A DNA stretch of 64,000 bases, from assembly GCF_052425735.1 (NCBI RefSeq), contig NC_135770.1, positions 37,758,001-37,822,000 of the forward strand, read 5' to 3'. Of this stretch, positions 42,815 to 60,742 are shown in pieces (within the stretch, counting starts at the first letter, position 1; every line of letters begins with the position of its first letter). Below the pieces are notes generated by a model. That model searched no databases. It worked only from the letters and a program-made list of their open reading frames with translations, and was not told where the DNA came from. This DNA is from Oculina patagonica (Eukaryota). The position numbers and the translations under genes were made by a program.

Positions 42815-43187
42815 CAGAGATTCCAACCCTCCCGATTTGATCGGGAGTCTCCCGATTTGATGCGTTGCCTCCCGCTCTCCCGATTTTTATCAGATTCTCC
42901 CGATTTATCATGAAATTCTGAAAACAAGAGAAAAATTGCTAATTTTTAGTACTTTTTTGCGATCTGAGTGTAGCAAAAGTAAAGAAAAGTACCAAAAATG
43001 TTTGTGAAAAGAATAAAGACCTTATAGAATAACTCAGAAATGATGTCAAAATGCCGGAAATGGCACTTGAGAGAACCTAAATGTGCAAAATTTCCCGGTG
43101 GAACATGCTTCCAGACCCCCCTAGAGGTGCACACCTTCAGCGCTAAAAATACTCCCTATTTTCCTTCAAAAAGGGTTGGAATCTCTG
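42815..43187. mobile_element. MITE with 6-bp TSD (copy 1)
   Basis: TIR CAGAGATTCCAACCCT / AGGGTTGGAATCTCTG; TSD TATTTG. Confidence 0.85.
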
Positions 43188-43947
43188 TATTTGACATCTA
43201 TGTTTTGTTGAGATATATAAAAAGATTTGACATGCACACTTGAAAATACTTGAAACACTTCAACACTTGAAATACTGAGGATCAAAAGTCCAACACTATT
43301 ACAGAAGAGGGGCTATTTACACACCATTTGTACATATCAATAACAAAAGGGCTTAATAATCCACTGTCTCCACTAAAATCTGAATTTTACTGTCTATCTT
43401 AGAACATTGAGAGTATTTTATACAAGACAGTCATGGATAAAATTACTGTGCTACAAATACCAAGAATTAATTTATGGAATGGAATATTCTTTTTCTACTC
43501 TTTTTTCAATAAACTCCCTTTAAACACACAAACACTTTGAGAAATGCAAATTTTGTGGTGTCTGATTGTACAGAGTCAATCTTAGACCTGCCAACTCTCA
43601 CACATTATGCGCGAGTCTCATGCCTGCAGATCCAAAATATAATTCCTCCATCTGTTAAATTGCTGACTTGATCTCAATGCTTCTACATCAATTATTTTTG
43701 AAAAGGAAAACCCTGGAATTTTCAGATTCAGTTTTTGAGATTAAACAGGAGGCAGTATCTAACACAAAAGTCTATCTCTAGATAAGCAACATGCAAAATT
43801 ATCTGAACCATGCAGTGCCCTTAGACAATGAAATGTTAAATGCCAGTGTTAATTCTGAGTTCTAGTTTTGTCTCAATTCTCATGTTTTCTGCTTAAAATA
43901 TTTAAGAATGCATCTTTGCGAGATCCACTGTAACAAAGAAGGCACCA

Positions 43948-45135
43948 CTACCAGCTACCACCTCTGCCACCGCCACCGCTGCTGCCGCCGCCACCGAATC
44001 CTCCACCACTGCCGAAACTACCACCACCGGGCATGGAGGACCTGACAAAAATAGGATCTGAAACAAAGCTTCCCGTGAAGCTGTTACTGCCCCACCTGTT
44101 TACCATGGTCTGCGTGACGAATGAAGGGTGCTGCAGCTGCAACATCATCAGGCGGAACTGGAGCTCTGGGAGGAAGTCATAGGTATTGCAGGCACCACCC
44201 TCGTCCTCCCGTCTGTCTGCTGACTGACGGCAGATGGGACAGGTTGCATGGTCCTCAAGCCACTTTGTTAAGCATGGTTCGCAGTATTTGTGACCACAAG
44301 CCAACAGTCTAGTCTTTGTTTCTGGTTGGAATTCTTCCAAGCAAATGGGACAGGACTTGCTTTCGTAAGACTTTTGAGACTTTTTAGCACTGTCCCTTTC
44401 CTCTTGGATTCTCTTCAGTTTGCGGGCACATTTCTCACGCTCTTGCTCTTGCTTGTGCCCAATATACAGCCCAACACCAACAATCACGACTAAAAACACG
44501 CAGAAGATGATTAGACCGTAGTTAAATGGCCGCTCGAGAACTTTTCCGCTGAAAACTTCGCCCATCCGCACAACAGCAAGTTCCACCGACTTGTCGTAGT
44601 CTTTTCTTTGCAGATATGGCTTCATTTCATCGATGATGATATCAATCTGATCATCGGAAAGCAGTTCCATGGCTCGCTTTCCTGTAGACACGTACACGTG
44701 GCGGTCAAGAATCGAAAGCAACAGCATTGCGCCGTCATCACAGCCTGCATGGCCTACACCCCAGCTGTCATGCAAGTTTTTTGCAAATTTCTCCGCTGTT
44801 TCTTCCACAGATTCCCCTGGAATGCGGCGCATTTTGTTCAAAACAGCAACACCGATTTGAAATCCAGCCTTTTCATCACTACTGCACCCTGAAACAGTAT
44901 TTTTCCCCACGGAATACAACAGTTCTTCGATCTTGTTGGCAGTCTCGTAGCTGAGAATTTTCTCTGGATCACAGATCCAGGAAACTCTTCCTCGGCGACC
45001 ACAAGATCCAAGATCTTTTGTGGGGTTCGGAAATTCTTCTTTACGCCATTCCTGGGTACTCTTTCCTTCTTGGAAAAAACATAAAGCCACAAAAACTGCG
45101 AGGAAAACTACTCTTTTTCCGAATGCTTCCGCCAT
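43948..45135 (-). CDS. Single-exon type I membrane protein: signal peptide, TPM/MOLO-1-like domain, TM helix, RING finger, Gly-rich tail; putative membrane E3 ubiquitin ligase
   Basis: WRKEEFPNP..CGR..SWICDPEKIL and FAKNLHDSWGVG..DDGAMLLLSILDRHVYVSTG (TPM/MOLO-1); TM YGLIIFCVFLVVIVGVGLYI; CPICLEEF..CGHKYCEPCLTKWL...CPICR (C3HC4); ends GGGFGGGGSSGGGGRGGSW. Confidence 0.9.
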   Translation of the reverse strand: MAEAFGKRVVFLAVFVALCFFQEGKSTQEWRKEEFPNPTKDLGSCGRRGRVSWICDPEKILSYETANKIEELLYSVGKNTVSGCSSDEKAGFQIGVAVLNKMRRIPGESVEETAEKFAKNLHDSWGVGHAGCDDGAMLLLSILDRHVYVSTGKRAMELLSDDQIDIIIDEMKPYLQRKDYDKSVELAVVRMGEVFSGKVLERPFNYGLIIFCVFLVVIVGVGLYIGHKQEQEREKCARKLKRIQEERDSAKKSQKSYESKSCPICLEEFQPETKTRLLACGHKYCEPCLTKWLEDHATCPICRQSADRREDEGGACNTYDFLPELQFRLMMLQLQHPSFVTQTMVNRWGSNSFTGSFVSDPIFVRSSMPGGGSFGSGGGFGGGGSSGGGGRGGSW

Positions 45136-45758
45136 CTTGACAAGTTTCGATTTGTTTTGTGTCCACGTGAAACTGCTGACTCATCTATCGCGGGTTCGCA
45201 TTCTTCTACGTGGCCCTCGCGCATTGGCCGCTCGTGTTTTCACGCAACGAGCTGTTTTCCTTGCGTCATATTTTGTACTGCATGTGTTATTGTTGTGTTT
45301 TGTTTTCCCGTTTACTTTACCTTAAAGAAGAAGACGAAGGCCACTATTGAAAAAATAAATAAATTAACGATAGTTTAGTCAATGATATTTTTATAGAAAT
45401 GGGCTTTTATTTTAGAAATGGCTGTTAGAAATGGCCAGCGCGCGTGTAGTCTGAAATAAAATCCGGGCGGTCCAGATGGAAAATCTGGACCAGTCGTTTA
45501 GCCAATCAGATTGCTGGATTCACTTTGTCTTGACCGCCCACGGCACAAAAATAATAAATGGGTGAAAATCTGGGGGGAGGCACTTTGTGTAGGGGTGCTC
45601 TGCTGCGGTCCAGGAGCCTCTATACTACCCTGTCTCAGATCAAAAAAAAACTTACGATCTTTTTTTTCATCTTTTGGTCTCTTAGAAAAAAAAAAAACGA
45701 GTTTCGCTGGTTTCAGGACTTTGCAGCAGCATTGCAAAAATTGTGGATTCGACCACAT

Positions 45759-46108
45759 CAGATATTTCAACGCTCTTTGAAGGAAAATAGGGAGTAATTT
45801 TAGCGCTGAAGGTGCGAGACTCTAGAGGGTCTGGAGGCATGTTCCACCGGGAAATTTTGCAAATTTAGGTCCTCTCAAGTGCCATTTTCGGCATTTTGAC
45901 ATCATTTCTGAGTTATTCTATAAGGTCTTTATTCTTTTCACAAACATTTTTGTGCTTTCCTTTACTTTTGTTACACTCAGATCGCAAAAAAGTACTAAGA
46001 TTAGCAATTTTTCTCTTGTTTTCAGAATTTCATGATAAATCGGGAGAATCGGATAAAAATCGGGGAAGCGGGAGGCAACACATCAAATCGGGAGGGTTGG
46101 AATCTCTG
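45759..46108. mobile_element. MITE with 6-bp TSD (copy 2, inverted relative to 42815-43187)
   Basis: Reverse complement of copy 1 over ~330 bp; decayed left TIR; flanks CCACAT / CCATAT. Confidence 0.8.
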
Positions 46109-46195
46109 CCATATTGCAGTTTAATTATCTAACCTTTTCCTTGGGTTACTAACTGTAAAGATTTTTCTCTTCAATGAAATGTTGTGTGGACTGTG

Positions 46196-47140
46196 CCCGG
46201 GGGGGGGGGGGCACTCAAAAAAGTTTTATACGGGGGAGGCTCCGCCCTGAGATCCAACCCCTTACCCTTTTATATACCATTTTGACAGAAAAGGTACCCC
46301 TTTCGTTTACCTTTTATAGAAAAAAGGTACCCCTTTCATATACCTACACGACACAAAATAAACTCAAAACAGGACGTTTTCTTGACATTTTTTACGTAGC
46401 GCATAATAAATTAAGACGATACAGCCATAAGTTGCGTCTGTTTAAAATAATTAATTTAAAGGCCTTTTTAAATATCATAATGATAATAATTTGCTCATTT
46501 ATATAGCGCATATTTCCATATTCTGATCAATAGCGCTTTACATATTTAAGAGAAAATTAAAAATTACATCACCATGAAAATAAAATAAAGTTATAAATTA
46601 TAAAAATACTTCTTAAAAAGATAAGTTTTAAGTTGAGATTTAAAACAGTCAAGTGATGTTGCTTGACGAAGCTCCACAGGTAGGCCATTCCAGAGTTTCG
46701 GAGCTGCTACTGAAAATGATCTAGCTCCCAGTGTTGACAGCATCTTTCCCTTGGGATGGTCCAATAAGGACATGCCAGTAGACCTAAGATTGTATAATGA
46801 ATTCGATTTTATGCTAATCAGATCGCTAAGATAAGTTGGCGCTAGGCCATAAATACATTTAAAAGTCAAAGTAAAATCTTATAATCAATACGCAAAGAAA
46901 CCGGCAGCCAGTGCAGCTCGTAAAGCGCCGGTGTAATGTGAGAAAACTTTCCGATGCTAAGAATAAGTCTTGCTGCTGCATTTTGTACATGCTGTAATTT
47001 AGCAATCTAAATGACAGATTTCCCTACCCTTTCATATGCATAAGCTTGTGAAATCCCTACCCTTTTATATACCTGAAGCCTGAAAAAGGTACCCCTTTCG
47101 GGCGGAGCCTCCCCGTATAGCCCCCCCCCCGCCCCCGGGG
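46196..47140. mobile_element. CCCGGG-ended DNA element (copy 2) with nested LINE fragment
   Basis: Colinear with 41994-42413; 8-bp TSD GGACTGTG. Confidence 0.8.
46474..47005 (-). mobile_element. 5'-truncated L2/CR1-clade LINE fragment
   Basis: ORF2 C-terminus LHWLPV / TFKCIYGLAPTYLSDLI...RSFSVAAPKLWNGLP...FKSQLKTYLF and a short TAT-type tail. Confidence 0.85.
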
Positions 47141-47402
47141 GGACTGTGGAATTTCATTCTACTGTCTCTTCTTAAACCCTGCACAGCCACTGGTATATTT
47201 AAGTTCAATTCAACCAATGGATACTAAAAAAATTTTCTAGTCAATGTTGTTGGAACCAATTGAAAAGACATTCTTTTGACAAGCTGCAAACAATTTTATT
47301 GCTAGTTCACGGCTATAAAATCTATGTACACAATAATTTAAACAGTTTTCACTTCAAATAAAAAAATTCTTGAGTTCATATATGCAATAACCAGCGATGT
47401 TG

Positions 47403-60064: not shown

Positions 60065-60742
60065 TCACTCTTCCTTAGTCTTTGCATCGTGGTCTTCATC
60101 GCTGCGGTTCAACTCTTTTATGGCCAAAATATCGCCGATCTTCCTCACCTCAGAAAACAGGTCCACACTCGCCATGGGTTCGTAATCTTCCGCTGCTTTC
60201 TCGGCGGCCTGTCGGACGTGCTTCGCGACTTCGGAGATAGCTGTGTCGAACTTGTCTCTGTGTCTCATTACAAAGGGACAGATGAGGAAGTTGTAAATGA
60301 CGGTTGTACCACTCCATGGGCCAGGAAACATGCACCAAACAAGCAAGAAAAACTTTAGCAGGTAATATAACGGAATCCATTCCAGAAAAATTTCCAAGAA
60401 ATTCACCGTGCTGAAAACCAGCCAGTATGTGAGCCATTTGGTGTCATCTGTCACATTACCAGTCTCTATTGCTTTCACTGACGCATAGGTTGGAAACACA
60501 AAGCCGAGGAAATAGCACAGAAAGTTTGCAGCATAACCAACAGCCAGGTAGAACAAGATGAAGCACAGGCCGCCCAGGAACAAAGTGTGTCTTTTGACAT
60601 TAGTTGCGGCCTCTAGTTTGTTTAGCAGGTCCGTGAATATGTTGCGCTGATCAAGGAGTTCATTAACTGCCTTGATGGACACGCTCCTTTTTACAGTCGC
60701 CACCAGGCTGGAACAAATGGACAATAGTCTACTCCCGTCCAT
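60065..60742 (-). CDS. Receptor expression-enhancing protein 5/6-like (DP1/Yop1, TB2/HVA22 domain), single exon
   Basis: GFVFPTYASVKAIET..DDTKWLTYWLVFS..WIPLYYLLKFFLLVWCMFP..SGTTVIYN is the DP1/Yop1 signature. Confidence 0.9.
   Translation of the reverse strand: MDGSRLLSICSSLVATVKRSVSIKAVNELLDQRNIFTDLLNKLEAATNVKRHTLFLGGLCFILFYLAVGYAANFLCYFLGFVFPTYASVKAIETGNVTDDTKWLTYWLVFSTVNFLEIFLEWIPLYYLLKFFLLVWCMFPGPWSGTTVIYNFLICPFVMRHRDKFDTAISEVAKHVRQAAEKAAEDYEPMASVDLFSEVRKIGDILAIKELNRSDEDHDAKTKEE

Follow-up and report, generated by a model that had tools for sequence, protein, structure and literature searches.

We analysed a 64,000-nucleotide stretch of the genome of the coral Oculina patagonica (contig NC_135770.1, positions 37,758,001 to 37,822,000; hereafter the window, to whose first letter all coordinates refer). 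At 43948..45135 on the minus strand, it holds an uninterrupted open reading frame (ORF) of 395 codons, which begins with an ATG in good context (A at -3, G at +4) and is closed by a TAG at 43948-43950. Its product joins a MOLO1-type TPM ectodomain to a RING finger across a predicted transmembrane (TM) helix and, judged by its sequence, is a member of a large, old, pan-eukaryotic and uncharacterised TPM-RING family. A previous reading of the letters alone (the sequence-only reading) had proposed the order signal, TPM, TM, short coiled coil, RING and tail, encoded in one exon. Pfam, hydropathy and the sequence itself place each part where it had been proposed, with the coiled coil softened to a helix, and the single exon held up as well, because homologues can be aligned in one unbroken stretch from signal peptide to final Trp. 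We thus regard 43948..45135 as a complete coding sequence of 395 codons plus TAG, an assignment that also draws on the substitution rates described below.

Genomic setting and selection

The genome measures 529 Mb, and the window is located about 37.8 Mb into one of its chromosome-scale contigs, with a guanine-cytosine (GC) content of about 40% throughout. TPM and MOLO1 profiles match this one place only in six-frame searches of the genome, the counts from which are lower bounds, indicating that the TPM-RING gene is single-copy. Contig L002 of a related assembly, as against the one copy here, carries two single-exon TPM-RING genes in tandem, at 4778-5965 (P0017) and 10001-11281 (P0009), which are about 4 kb apart on the same strand. 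The window gene is under strong purifying selection: compared with three orthologous or paralogous genes from related assemblies, the ratio of nonsynonymous to synonymous substitution rates (dN/dS) was 0.09-0.17 overall and 0.01-0.06 within the RING, which is the most constrained part of the gene.

Contigs from four sequencing runs cover about 43188-45171, with no cover in 45172-45839. They are only 92-95% alike to the window and therefore come from related species. The end of cover just 5' of the ATG fits a transcript with a short 5' untranslated region, the runs being guessed, not recorded, as RNA. By eye, the stretch of up to 100 bases 5' of the start codon shows a CCAAT box (45223-45227), an AP-1-like TGAGTCA (45177-45183) and an E-box CACGTG (45164-45169); cover by the related-species contigs stops at about 45171. 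No run in the sequencing-run search contained more than 18% of the words of the stretch and none was recorded as RNA, and an exact look-up of the protein across public assemblies returned no record.

A MOLO1-type TPM ectodomain behind a single membrane span

The protein starts with a predicted signal peptide of about residues 1-26 (45058..45135), recognised in the sequence by a K/R n-region, a 13-residue hydrophobic core (residues 9-21) and the segment QEGKS; its cleavage site was inferred from the sequence, without a dedicated predictor. A hydrophobic N-terminus is conserved among homologues. The ectodomain occupies residues 30-201 (44533..45048) and is delimited by Pfam matches, structure alignment and conserved columns. 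Pfam MOLO1 (PF17175) covers residues 30-144 (E 6e-21, 75.3 bits with a cut-off of 27, 121 of the 122 model positions matched) and TPM_phosphatase (PF04536) residues 55-192 (E 1e-18, 67.7 bits with a cut-off of 22.1), while an NCBIfam search with the protein gave only a sub-threshold Psb32 match. The predicted model (mean predicted local distance difference test score, pLDDT, of 84) adopts the alpha-beta-alpha sandwich of solved TPM domains. VIA-align matched it to BA41 with Z 19.6 and a root-mean-square deviation (rmsd) of 1.9 over 144 of 145 residues, and to Rhom172_1776, Psb32 and TLP18.3 with Z 18.4, 18.0 and 17.4, respectively; the nematode MOLO1 cluster superposes at 2.5 A over 197 residues. 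As modelled, the ectodomain is a canonical, MOLO-1-like TPM fold of the disulfide type, and the Pfam and structural matches to the nematode MOLO1 cluster and to solved TPM domains support the MOLO-1/TPM identity proposed earlier.

Conserved features of the ectodomain comprise four cysteines (Cys 45, 55, 84 and 132) and a WGVG / DR / TG signature. The four cysteines together with the signal peptide argue for an oxidising compartment around the ectodomain, which has no N-glycosylation sequons. Phosphatase and ATPase activities, binding of Ca, Mg or Mn and receptor modulation have all been reported for TPM domains, which have no single known activity (PMC13456599; bioRxiv 10.1101/2024.10.28.620569).

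Hydropathy and flanking charges define one TM helix at residues 204-226 (44458..44526), with a K/R-rich C-terminal flank and a modelled helix spanning 206-252. The signal-like N-terminus, the one hydrophobic span and the positive-inside flank fit a type-I membrane topology, as far as sequence can indicate it. A charged juxtamembrane helix follows at residues 227-258 (44362..44457), delimited from structure models. It corresponds to what had been read as a short coiled coil, a term better softened to a helix, predicted to continue from the TM span to about residue 252. When the cytosolic part is modelled by itself, this helix and those that follow the RING pack together into a generic helical bundle.

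The RING finger retains the residues expected for E2 engagement

A RING-HC (C3HC4) finger lies at residues 262-303 (44227..44352), supported by Pfam, PDB matches and superposition. Pfam zf-RING_2 matches residues 261-303 with E 1e-13, and six RING models exceed their own cut-offs. The zinc ligands C262, C265, C280, H282, C285, C288, C299 and C302 follow the pattern C-X2-C-X(9-39)-C-X(1-3)-H-X(2-3)-C-X2-C-X(4-48)-C-X2-C, and C285 is the cysteine at ligand 5 that the sequence-only reading had pointed out. Among PDB entries, the RINGs of RNF4, RLIM, RNF126, RNF38 and RNF13 are closest by sequence, and the model superposes on those of RNF165, RNF38, RNF12 and RNF13 at 0.9-2.9 A. Residues 256-312 of the model align with residues 407-462 of RNF38, which places R303 on R454, the linchpin named in PDB entry 9q8y; I264, W292, P300 and R303 together align with the E2-contact and linchpin positions of RNF38 and RLIM.

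These positions are conserved in the family. Among 213 RING-bearing relatives, Pro follows the seventh cysteine in all 213, Arg follows the last cysteine in 204, and Ile or Val precedes the second cysteine in 197. At ligand 5, 164 of them have Cys and 49 have His, so that the family switches between HC and H2, which explains why the RING had earlier been described as having a RING-H2-like context. With its ligands, E2-contact residues and linchpin Arg intact in sequence and model, the RING looks competent for E2 engagement.

The RING is followed by a family-specific helical block at residues 318-365 (44041..44184; consensus ..PEL.FRL..L...YP..VT..M..RW..), in which F327, R328, L329 and P337 are near-invariant. 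It is modelled with pLDDT above 90 as helices 322-335, 342-348 and 361-365. Fold searches with the cytosolic model gave specific matches for the RING only, and the helices resembled generic bundles at Z of about 5; hence they give no ground for claiming a known E2-backside-binding or dimerisation module.

A glycine-rich tail with a YgcG-type terminal motif

The remainder of the protein is a Gly/Ser-rich tail (43951..44040) that ends in FGGGGSSGGGGRGGSW, directly before the stop codon. E. coli YgcG likewise ends in GGFSGGGGSSGGGGASGRW followed by its stop codon, and 248 of 299 family proteins retrieved, bacterial ones among them, carry a terminal motif of this kind. The YgcG-type character assigned earlier to the tail is thus evident from the two termini themselves. 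AlphaFold, given the whole protein, models the final six residues with confidence as a strand (pLDDT about 84). When only residues 229-395 are modelled, the tail becomes disordered (pLDDT 44-47), with the RING and helices still above 90. Because the tail is ordered only in the full-length model, that model must dock it on the TPM half. Bacterial TPM-only models (AlphaFold DB, Atlas) also align as far as query residue 395. We considered the tail strand as a substitute for a canonical TPM strand, as in BA42, and found this unsupported, given that solved TPM domains align only to residues of about 24-204.

A pan-eukaryotic TPM-RING family

Searching 1.84 billion cluster representatives exhaustively with HMMER yielded at least 193 clusters (50% identity) matching at E<=1e-30; the whole architecture is common to most of the 150 clusters among the matches listed, of 193. 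A word-indexed search gave 139 relatives. Few members carry names, among them Pelomyxa schiedti and Rhizamoeba saxonica (Amoebozoa), Entosiphon sulcatum (from a euglenid transcriptome), Bryopsis and Volvox africanus (green algae) and several MMETSP marine protists. The protist members derive from transcriptome assemblies (EukProt Trinity and MMETSP entries). Atlas clusters with TPM and RING bear automatic labels of Cnidaria, Chlorophyta and Bacillariophyta, and the term cnidarian for the close relatives of the window protein rests on one named Porites sequence together with the automatic Atlas label. Two Pelomyxa schiedti proteins of this architecture, P0154 and P0162 (KAH3757729 and KAH3744965), are publicly named "Dynein heavy chain 12, axonemal", an evident mis-annotation. 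A short MOLO1-only match, P0332, was set aside as a poor and probably frameshifted high-GC sequence.

An alignment of 31 members has conserved blocks over its whole length. In order, these are FPNP..D...CGR...S.ICDP with the four ectodomain cysteines, the TPM core motifs LHD.WGVG and DR...STG, the TM span, the RING, the post-RING block and the terminal FGGG.S.GGGG.G.W. The window protein has all of these blocks and aligns with 30 family members and, in a separate comparison, with 34 cytosolic parts. By this measure, the post-RING block and the tail belong to the family as much as both Pfam domains do. The gene is therefore not a new fusion in this genome, since the same architecture, post-RING block and tail included, recurs across eukaryotes. 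A literature search found no paper characterising a TPM-RING protein, and the labelled animal-type members with a RING were cnidarian-type only; neither a prior characterisation nor a broad vertical spread in animals, either of which would have spoken against the sequence-only reading, thus came to light. A preprint describes eukaryotic TPM domains as confined to invertebrates and phototrophs (bioRxiv 10.1101/2024.10.28.620569), a range that the amoebozoan and euglenid members widen.

Descent of the gene and repeated loss of the RING

In a tree of the ectodomain only, the eukaryotic proteins make up a well-supported group that excludes the bacterial TPM-TM-tail proteins, and the cnidarian-type sequences form one clade (Shimodaira-Hasegawa-like approximate likelihood ratio test, SH-aLRT, 96) that groups with chlorophyte sequences (SH-aLRT 94). 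A tree built from the RING-bearing members at full length puts the cnidarian clade (support 99) on the side of Amoebozoa and Entosiphon, and the chlorophytes in a separate clade with support 98. An approximately unbiased (AU) test did not reject a clade of cnidarians and Amoebozoa (p 0.30). In addition, the RING spans a compact 41-42 residues in the window protein, Amoebozoa and Entosiphon, as against 126-143 in Bryopsis and Volvox. The full-length tree, the AU test and the compact RING make descent within eukaryotes the simplest reading. The algal transfer hinted at by the ectodomain tree was not upheld by the full-length tree and the AU test, and a recent acquisition from a microbe is not supported by these sequence comparisons. 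An origin had earlier been suggested that was either ancient or by acquisition from a microbe or protist: the ancient part agrees with the spread of the architecture across eukaryotes, and the acquisition part does not agree with the monophyly of the cnidarian-type copies and the clade with Amoebozoa that was not rejected. The accompanying picture, in which the RING separates the membrane anchor of a YgcG-type scaffold from its tail, is in line with the order of parts and the shared tail.

About 45 coral-type proteins of 270-315 residues (P0044-P0089; for example Porites harrisoni KAM7431148, which is P0086) have no RING. In the ectodomain tree, such paralogues arose at least four separate times inside the RING-bearing coral clade. 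Ectodomain and terminal Gly-Trp motif are still present in them, and most also have a hydrophobic TM-like span, with a short unrelated linker in place of the RING and helical block. In two pairs that we compared, the RING-less and RING-bearing copies share 78% identity over the ectodomain (in P0016/P0056 also over the TM span), beyond which the RING-less copy is unrelated until the tail. The tail is retained in 88 RING-less proteins; as it survives loss of the RING, selection must keep it independently of the RING. Such loss is a plausible route to the RING-less MOLO-1 of bilaterians. Used as queries for further homologues, neither a RING-less coral protein nor an alignment of N-terminal halves retrieved a named bilaterian MOLO-1.

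Several bacterial relatives (P0109, P0117, P0120, P0297 and P0330) have four CxxC pairs, resembling a zinc ribbon, between the membrane anchor and the Gly tail, a segment that occupies the position of the eukaryotic RING. A Bacteroidota Atlas cluster combines TPM with a TFIIS-type zinc ribbon.

Other features of the window

Beside the gene, contig depth reaches hundreds to thousands in all four runs at 46174-46340, 47009-47175 and 42834-43167, and many contig joints fall at 46344-46483 and 47007-47059; the high-depth stretches look like copies of a high-copy interspersed repeat. Farther away, an ORF of 577 amino acids at 283-2016 on the plus strand has a partial LicD-family match (E 9e-7), and one of 225 amino acids at 60065-60742 on the minus strand contains a TB2/DP1/HVA22 (REEP-type) domain (E 2e-21). 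Both are probably host exons or genes.

Proposed function and alternatives

We propose that the window protein is a type-I membrane RING-HC E3 ubiquitin ligase of an ancient pan-eukaryotic family that reached corals by descent, a reading to which we assign a probability of roughly 0.6. The TPM domain would face the lumen of the endoplasmic reticulum (ER) or Golgi, or the cell exterior, and would there bind a ligand or a membrane-protein partner, much as MOLO-1 does with an acetylcholine receptor. The cytosolic RING would recruit a charged E2 and ubiquitinate cytosolic parts of the partner or of neighbouring proteins, and this ubiquitination could control the turnover or sorting of the partner in the manner of RNF13/RNF128 or ZNRF3/RNF43. 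By analogy with such ligases, the protein may be a receptor-type E3 acting on surface receptors. The tail would be a separate functional element inherited from a prokaryotic TPM-TM-tail scaffold and, because it survives RING loss, is probably a docking peptide. A zinc module would have been placed between anchor and tail early in eukaryote evolution, with descent to corals thereafter.

Several observations weigh against this proposal. The full-length model puts the terminal tail on the TPM half, a contact that is impossible in cis in the proposed topology because one TM span separates the two. This contact may be a modelling artefact, or a sign that the partner of the tail resembles the edge of a TPM sheet; either the full-length model is wrong at the tail, or the topology or the tail's partner is not understood. 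A two-copy complex prediction of residues 228-395 scored 0.00 with poorly folded chains and is evidence neither way. As TPM domains have no single known function, a sensor role for this one is an analogy. Finally, cover of the gene comes only from contigs of related organisms, in runs that we guessed to be RNA.

The protein might also be an E3 with ligase activity at an intracellular site rather than at the cell surface, serving ER, Golgi or endosomal quality control or the sensing of membrane stress, with the TPM domain reading luminal metal, a nucleotide, a phosphate ester or redox state. Many TM RING ligases with luminal domains reside in endomembranes, according to a review (PMC4021871), and plant and cyanobacterial TPM domains act in the thylakoid lumen and bind metals (PMC13456599; bioRxiv 10.1101/2024.10.28.620569). 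YgcG/SamH-type proteins, moreover, are encoded in envelope-stress loci (yqcG beside ygcG; SamH in the pspA operon), and the family is present in unicellular protists, which have no synapses. The evidence does not discriminate between compartments, however. No sorting motif was identified and the ectodomain is free of N-glycosylation sequons, and we consider an endomembrane role unlikely. We think it distinctly unlikely that the RING is a secondary or regulatory appendage to a TPM-TM-tail core that acts, like MOLO-1 or SamH, as a non-catalytic auxiliary subunit or scaffold. Such a role would suit the MOLO1-type ectodomain, the nearest whole-protein folds in Swiss-Prot (YgcG and YdjH), the conservation of the tail from bacteria onward, the signalling of SamH in a membrane complex (PMC13713150) and the four or more losses of the RING from coral paralogues that retain ectodomain, TM span and tail. 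Yet the window's genome has the RING-bearing copy only, the RING is the part held most tightly by selection (dN/dS 0.01-0.06), and it is difficult to account for conserved E2-contact and linchpin residues in 213 relatives, across very deep divergence, unless the RING serves as a ligase.

A recent horizontal acquisition from a bacterium, symbiotic alga or protist, or contamination of the assembly, would leave the single exon as its trace and would account for the bacterial-type tail and for the grouping of the ectodomain with chlorophytes (SH-aLRT 94). We regard this as very improbable: the gene sits about 37.8 Mb into a chromosome-scale contig amid eukaryotic sequence of about 40% GC, and its orthologues at 50-90% identity make up one deep clade (support 96-99). 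The full-length tree separates the chlorophytes (98) and the AU test does not reject cnidarians with Amoebozoa (p 0.30); the RING is compact as in Amoebozoa and Entosiphon, unlike that of Bryopsis and Volvox, and the bacterial relatives have none. Going beyond the membrane-ligase reading that we favour, one could imagine the terminal FGGG(S/G)Sx-GGGG-xGGSW as a universal, pre-eukaryotic docking peptide that ties TPM-domain membrane sensors to a cytosolic partner, and the early insertion of the RING as the step by which an envelope-stress-type sensor became a ligase. Animal MOLO-1 proteins would then be RING-less descendants of that ligase, through a loss like that in the coral paralogues, and their receptor modulation a remnant of an ancestral control of membrane-protein turnover. 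We hold this wider scenario to be quite unlikely as a whole.

TM RING ligases with luminal or extracellular sensors, such as RNF43/ZNRF3, GRAIL and RNF13, are important receptor regulators, and a ligase family based on TPM/MOLO-1 would, if true, bring a new type of input to membrane ubiquitination. It would also offer a possible evolutionary context for MOLO-1, which has so far stood alone as a nematode receptor subunit. Attention is drawn, moreover, to a short C-terminal motif common to E. coli YgcG and corals, the function of which has yet to be explained.

Comparison with known systems

C. elegans MOLO-1 is an auxiliary subunit of levamisole-sensitive acetylcholine receptors. It shares with the coral protein a signal peptide, a MOLO1-type TPM ectodomain and a single TM span, but the nematode MOLO1 cluster has no RING family, whereas the coral protein adds a RING, a helical block and a Gly tail after the TM span. 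The best whole-protein fold matches in Swiss-Prot are E. coli YgcG and B. subtilis YdjH/SamH (UPF0603, COG1512). Here the common ground is the order of signal, TPM, anchor and Gly/Ser tail together with a near-identical Trp-ending motif, found in YgcG and 20 bacterial-type relatives. The bacterial proteins have no RING, and the coral protein is set apart from them by its inserted RING and its helical block. Two or three hydrophobic segments occur in some of the bacterial proteins, and they lack the ectodomain Cys pairs and the FPNP..D...CGR...S.ICDP motif. B. subtilis SamH (YdjH), from the pspA operon, signals within a membrane complex in the PspA-SamGHI envelope stress system (PMC13713150). 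In E. coli K-12, ygcG is preceded, 13 bases away and in the same orientation, by the small gene yqcG (L007:3558-3698), which carries the annotation cell envelope stress response protein, a context that parallels the pspA-samGHI context of YdjH/SamH.

For the RING itself, the closest solved structures are those of RNF38, RLIM (RNF12) and RNF165, at 33-40% identity and an rmsd of 0.9-2.5 A. RNF38 and RLIM share the I, W and P E2-contact positions and the linchpin Arg of CPICR, but all three are RING-H2 fingers of soluble proteins, while the coral RING has Cys at ligand 5. In overall layout, the coral protein resembles the ligases with a protease-associated (PA) domain, one TM span and a RING (PA-TM-RING; RNF13, RNF128/GRAIL, RNF150 and plant RMR), which likewise have a signal peptide, a luminal or extracellular domain, one TM span and a cytosolic RING. 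Whole-chain fold matches to them are weak, the RNF13 RING superposes at 2.7-2.9 A (VIA-align) or about 1 A (Foldseek), and the cnidarian Atlas cluster is automatically labelled "RNF128 protein". Unlike these ligases, the coral protein has no PA domain match in Pfam, carrying a TPM domain instead, its RING is HC and not H2, and it has the additional post-RING block and Gly tail. ZNRF3 and RNF43 are type-I TM RING ligases that link an ectodomain to the ubiquitination of surface receptors. The RING region matches that of ZNRF3 by sequence (E 1e-7), but the ectodomains are unrelated, the cytosolic tails of ZNRF3 and RNF43 are far longer, and there is no sign of partners of the R-spondin/Frizzled type for the coral protein. 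It is thus analogous to the PA-TM-RING ligases and to ZNRF3/RNF43 and a member of neither. On sequence grounds, we would class it as an uncharacterised version of a known type of enzyme, old and widespread, and encoded by the sole TPM-domain gene detected in this coral.

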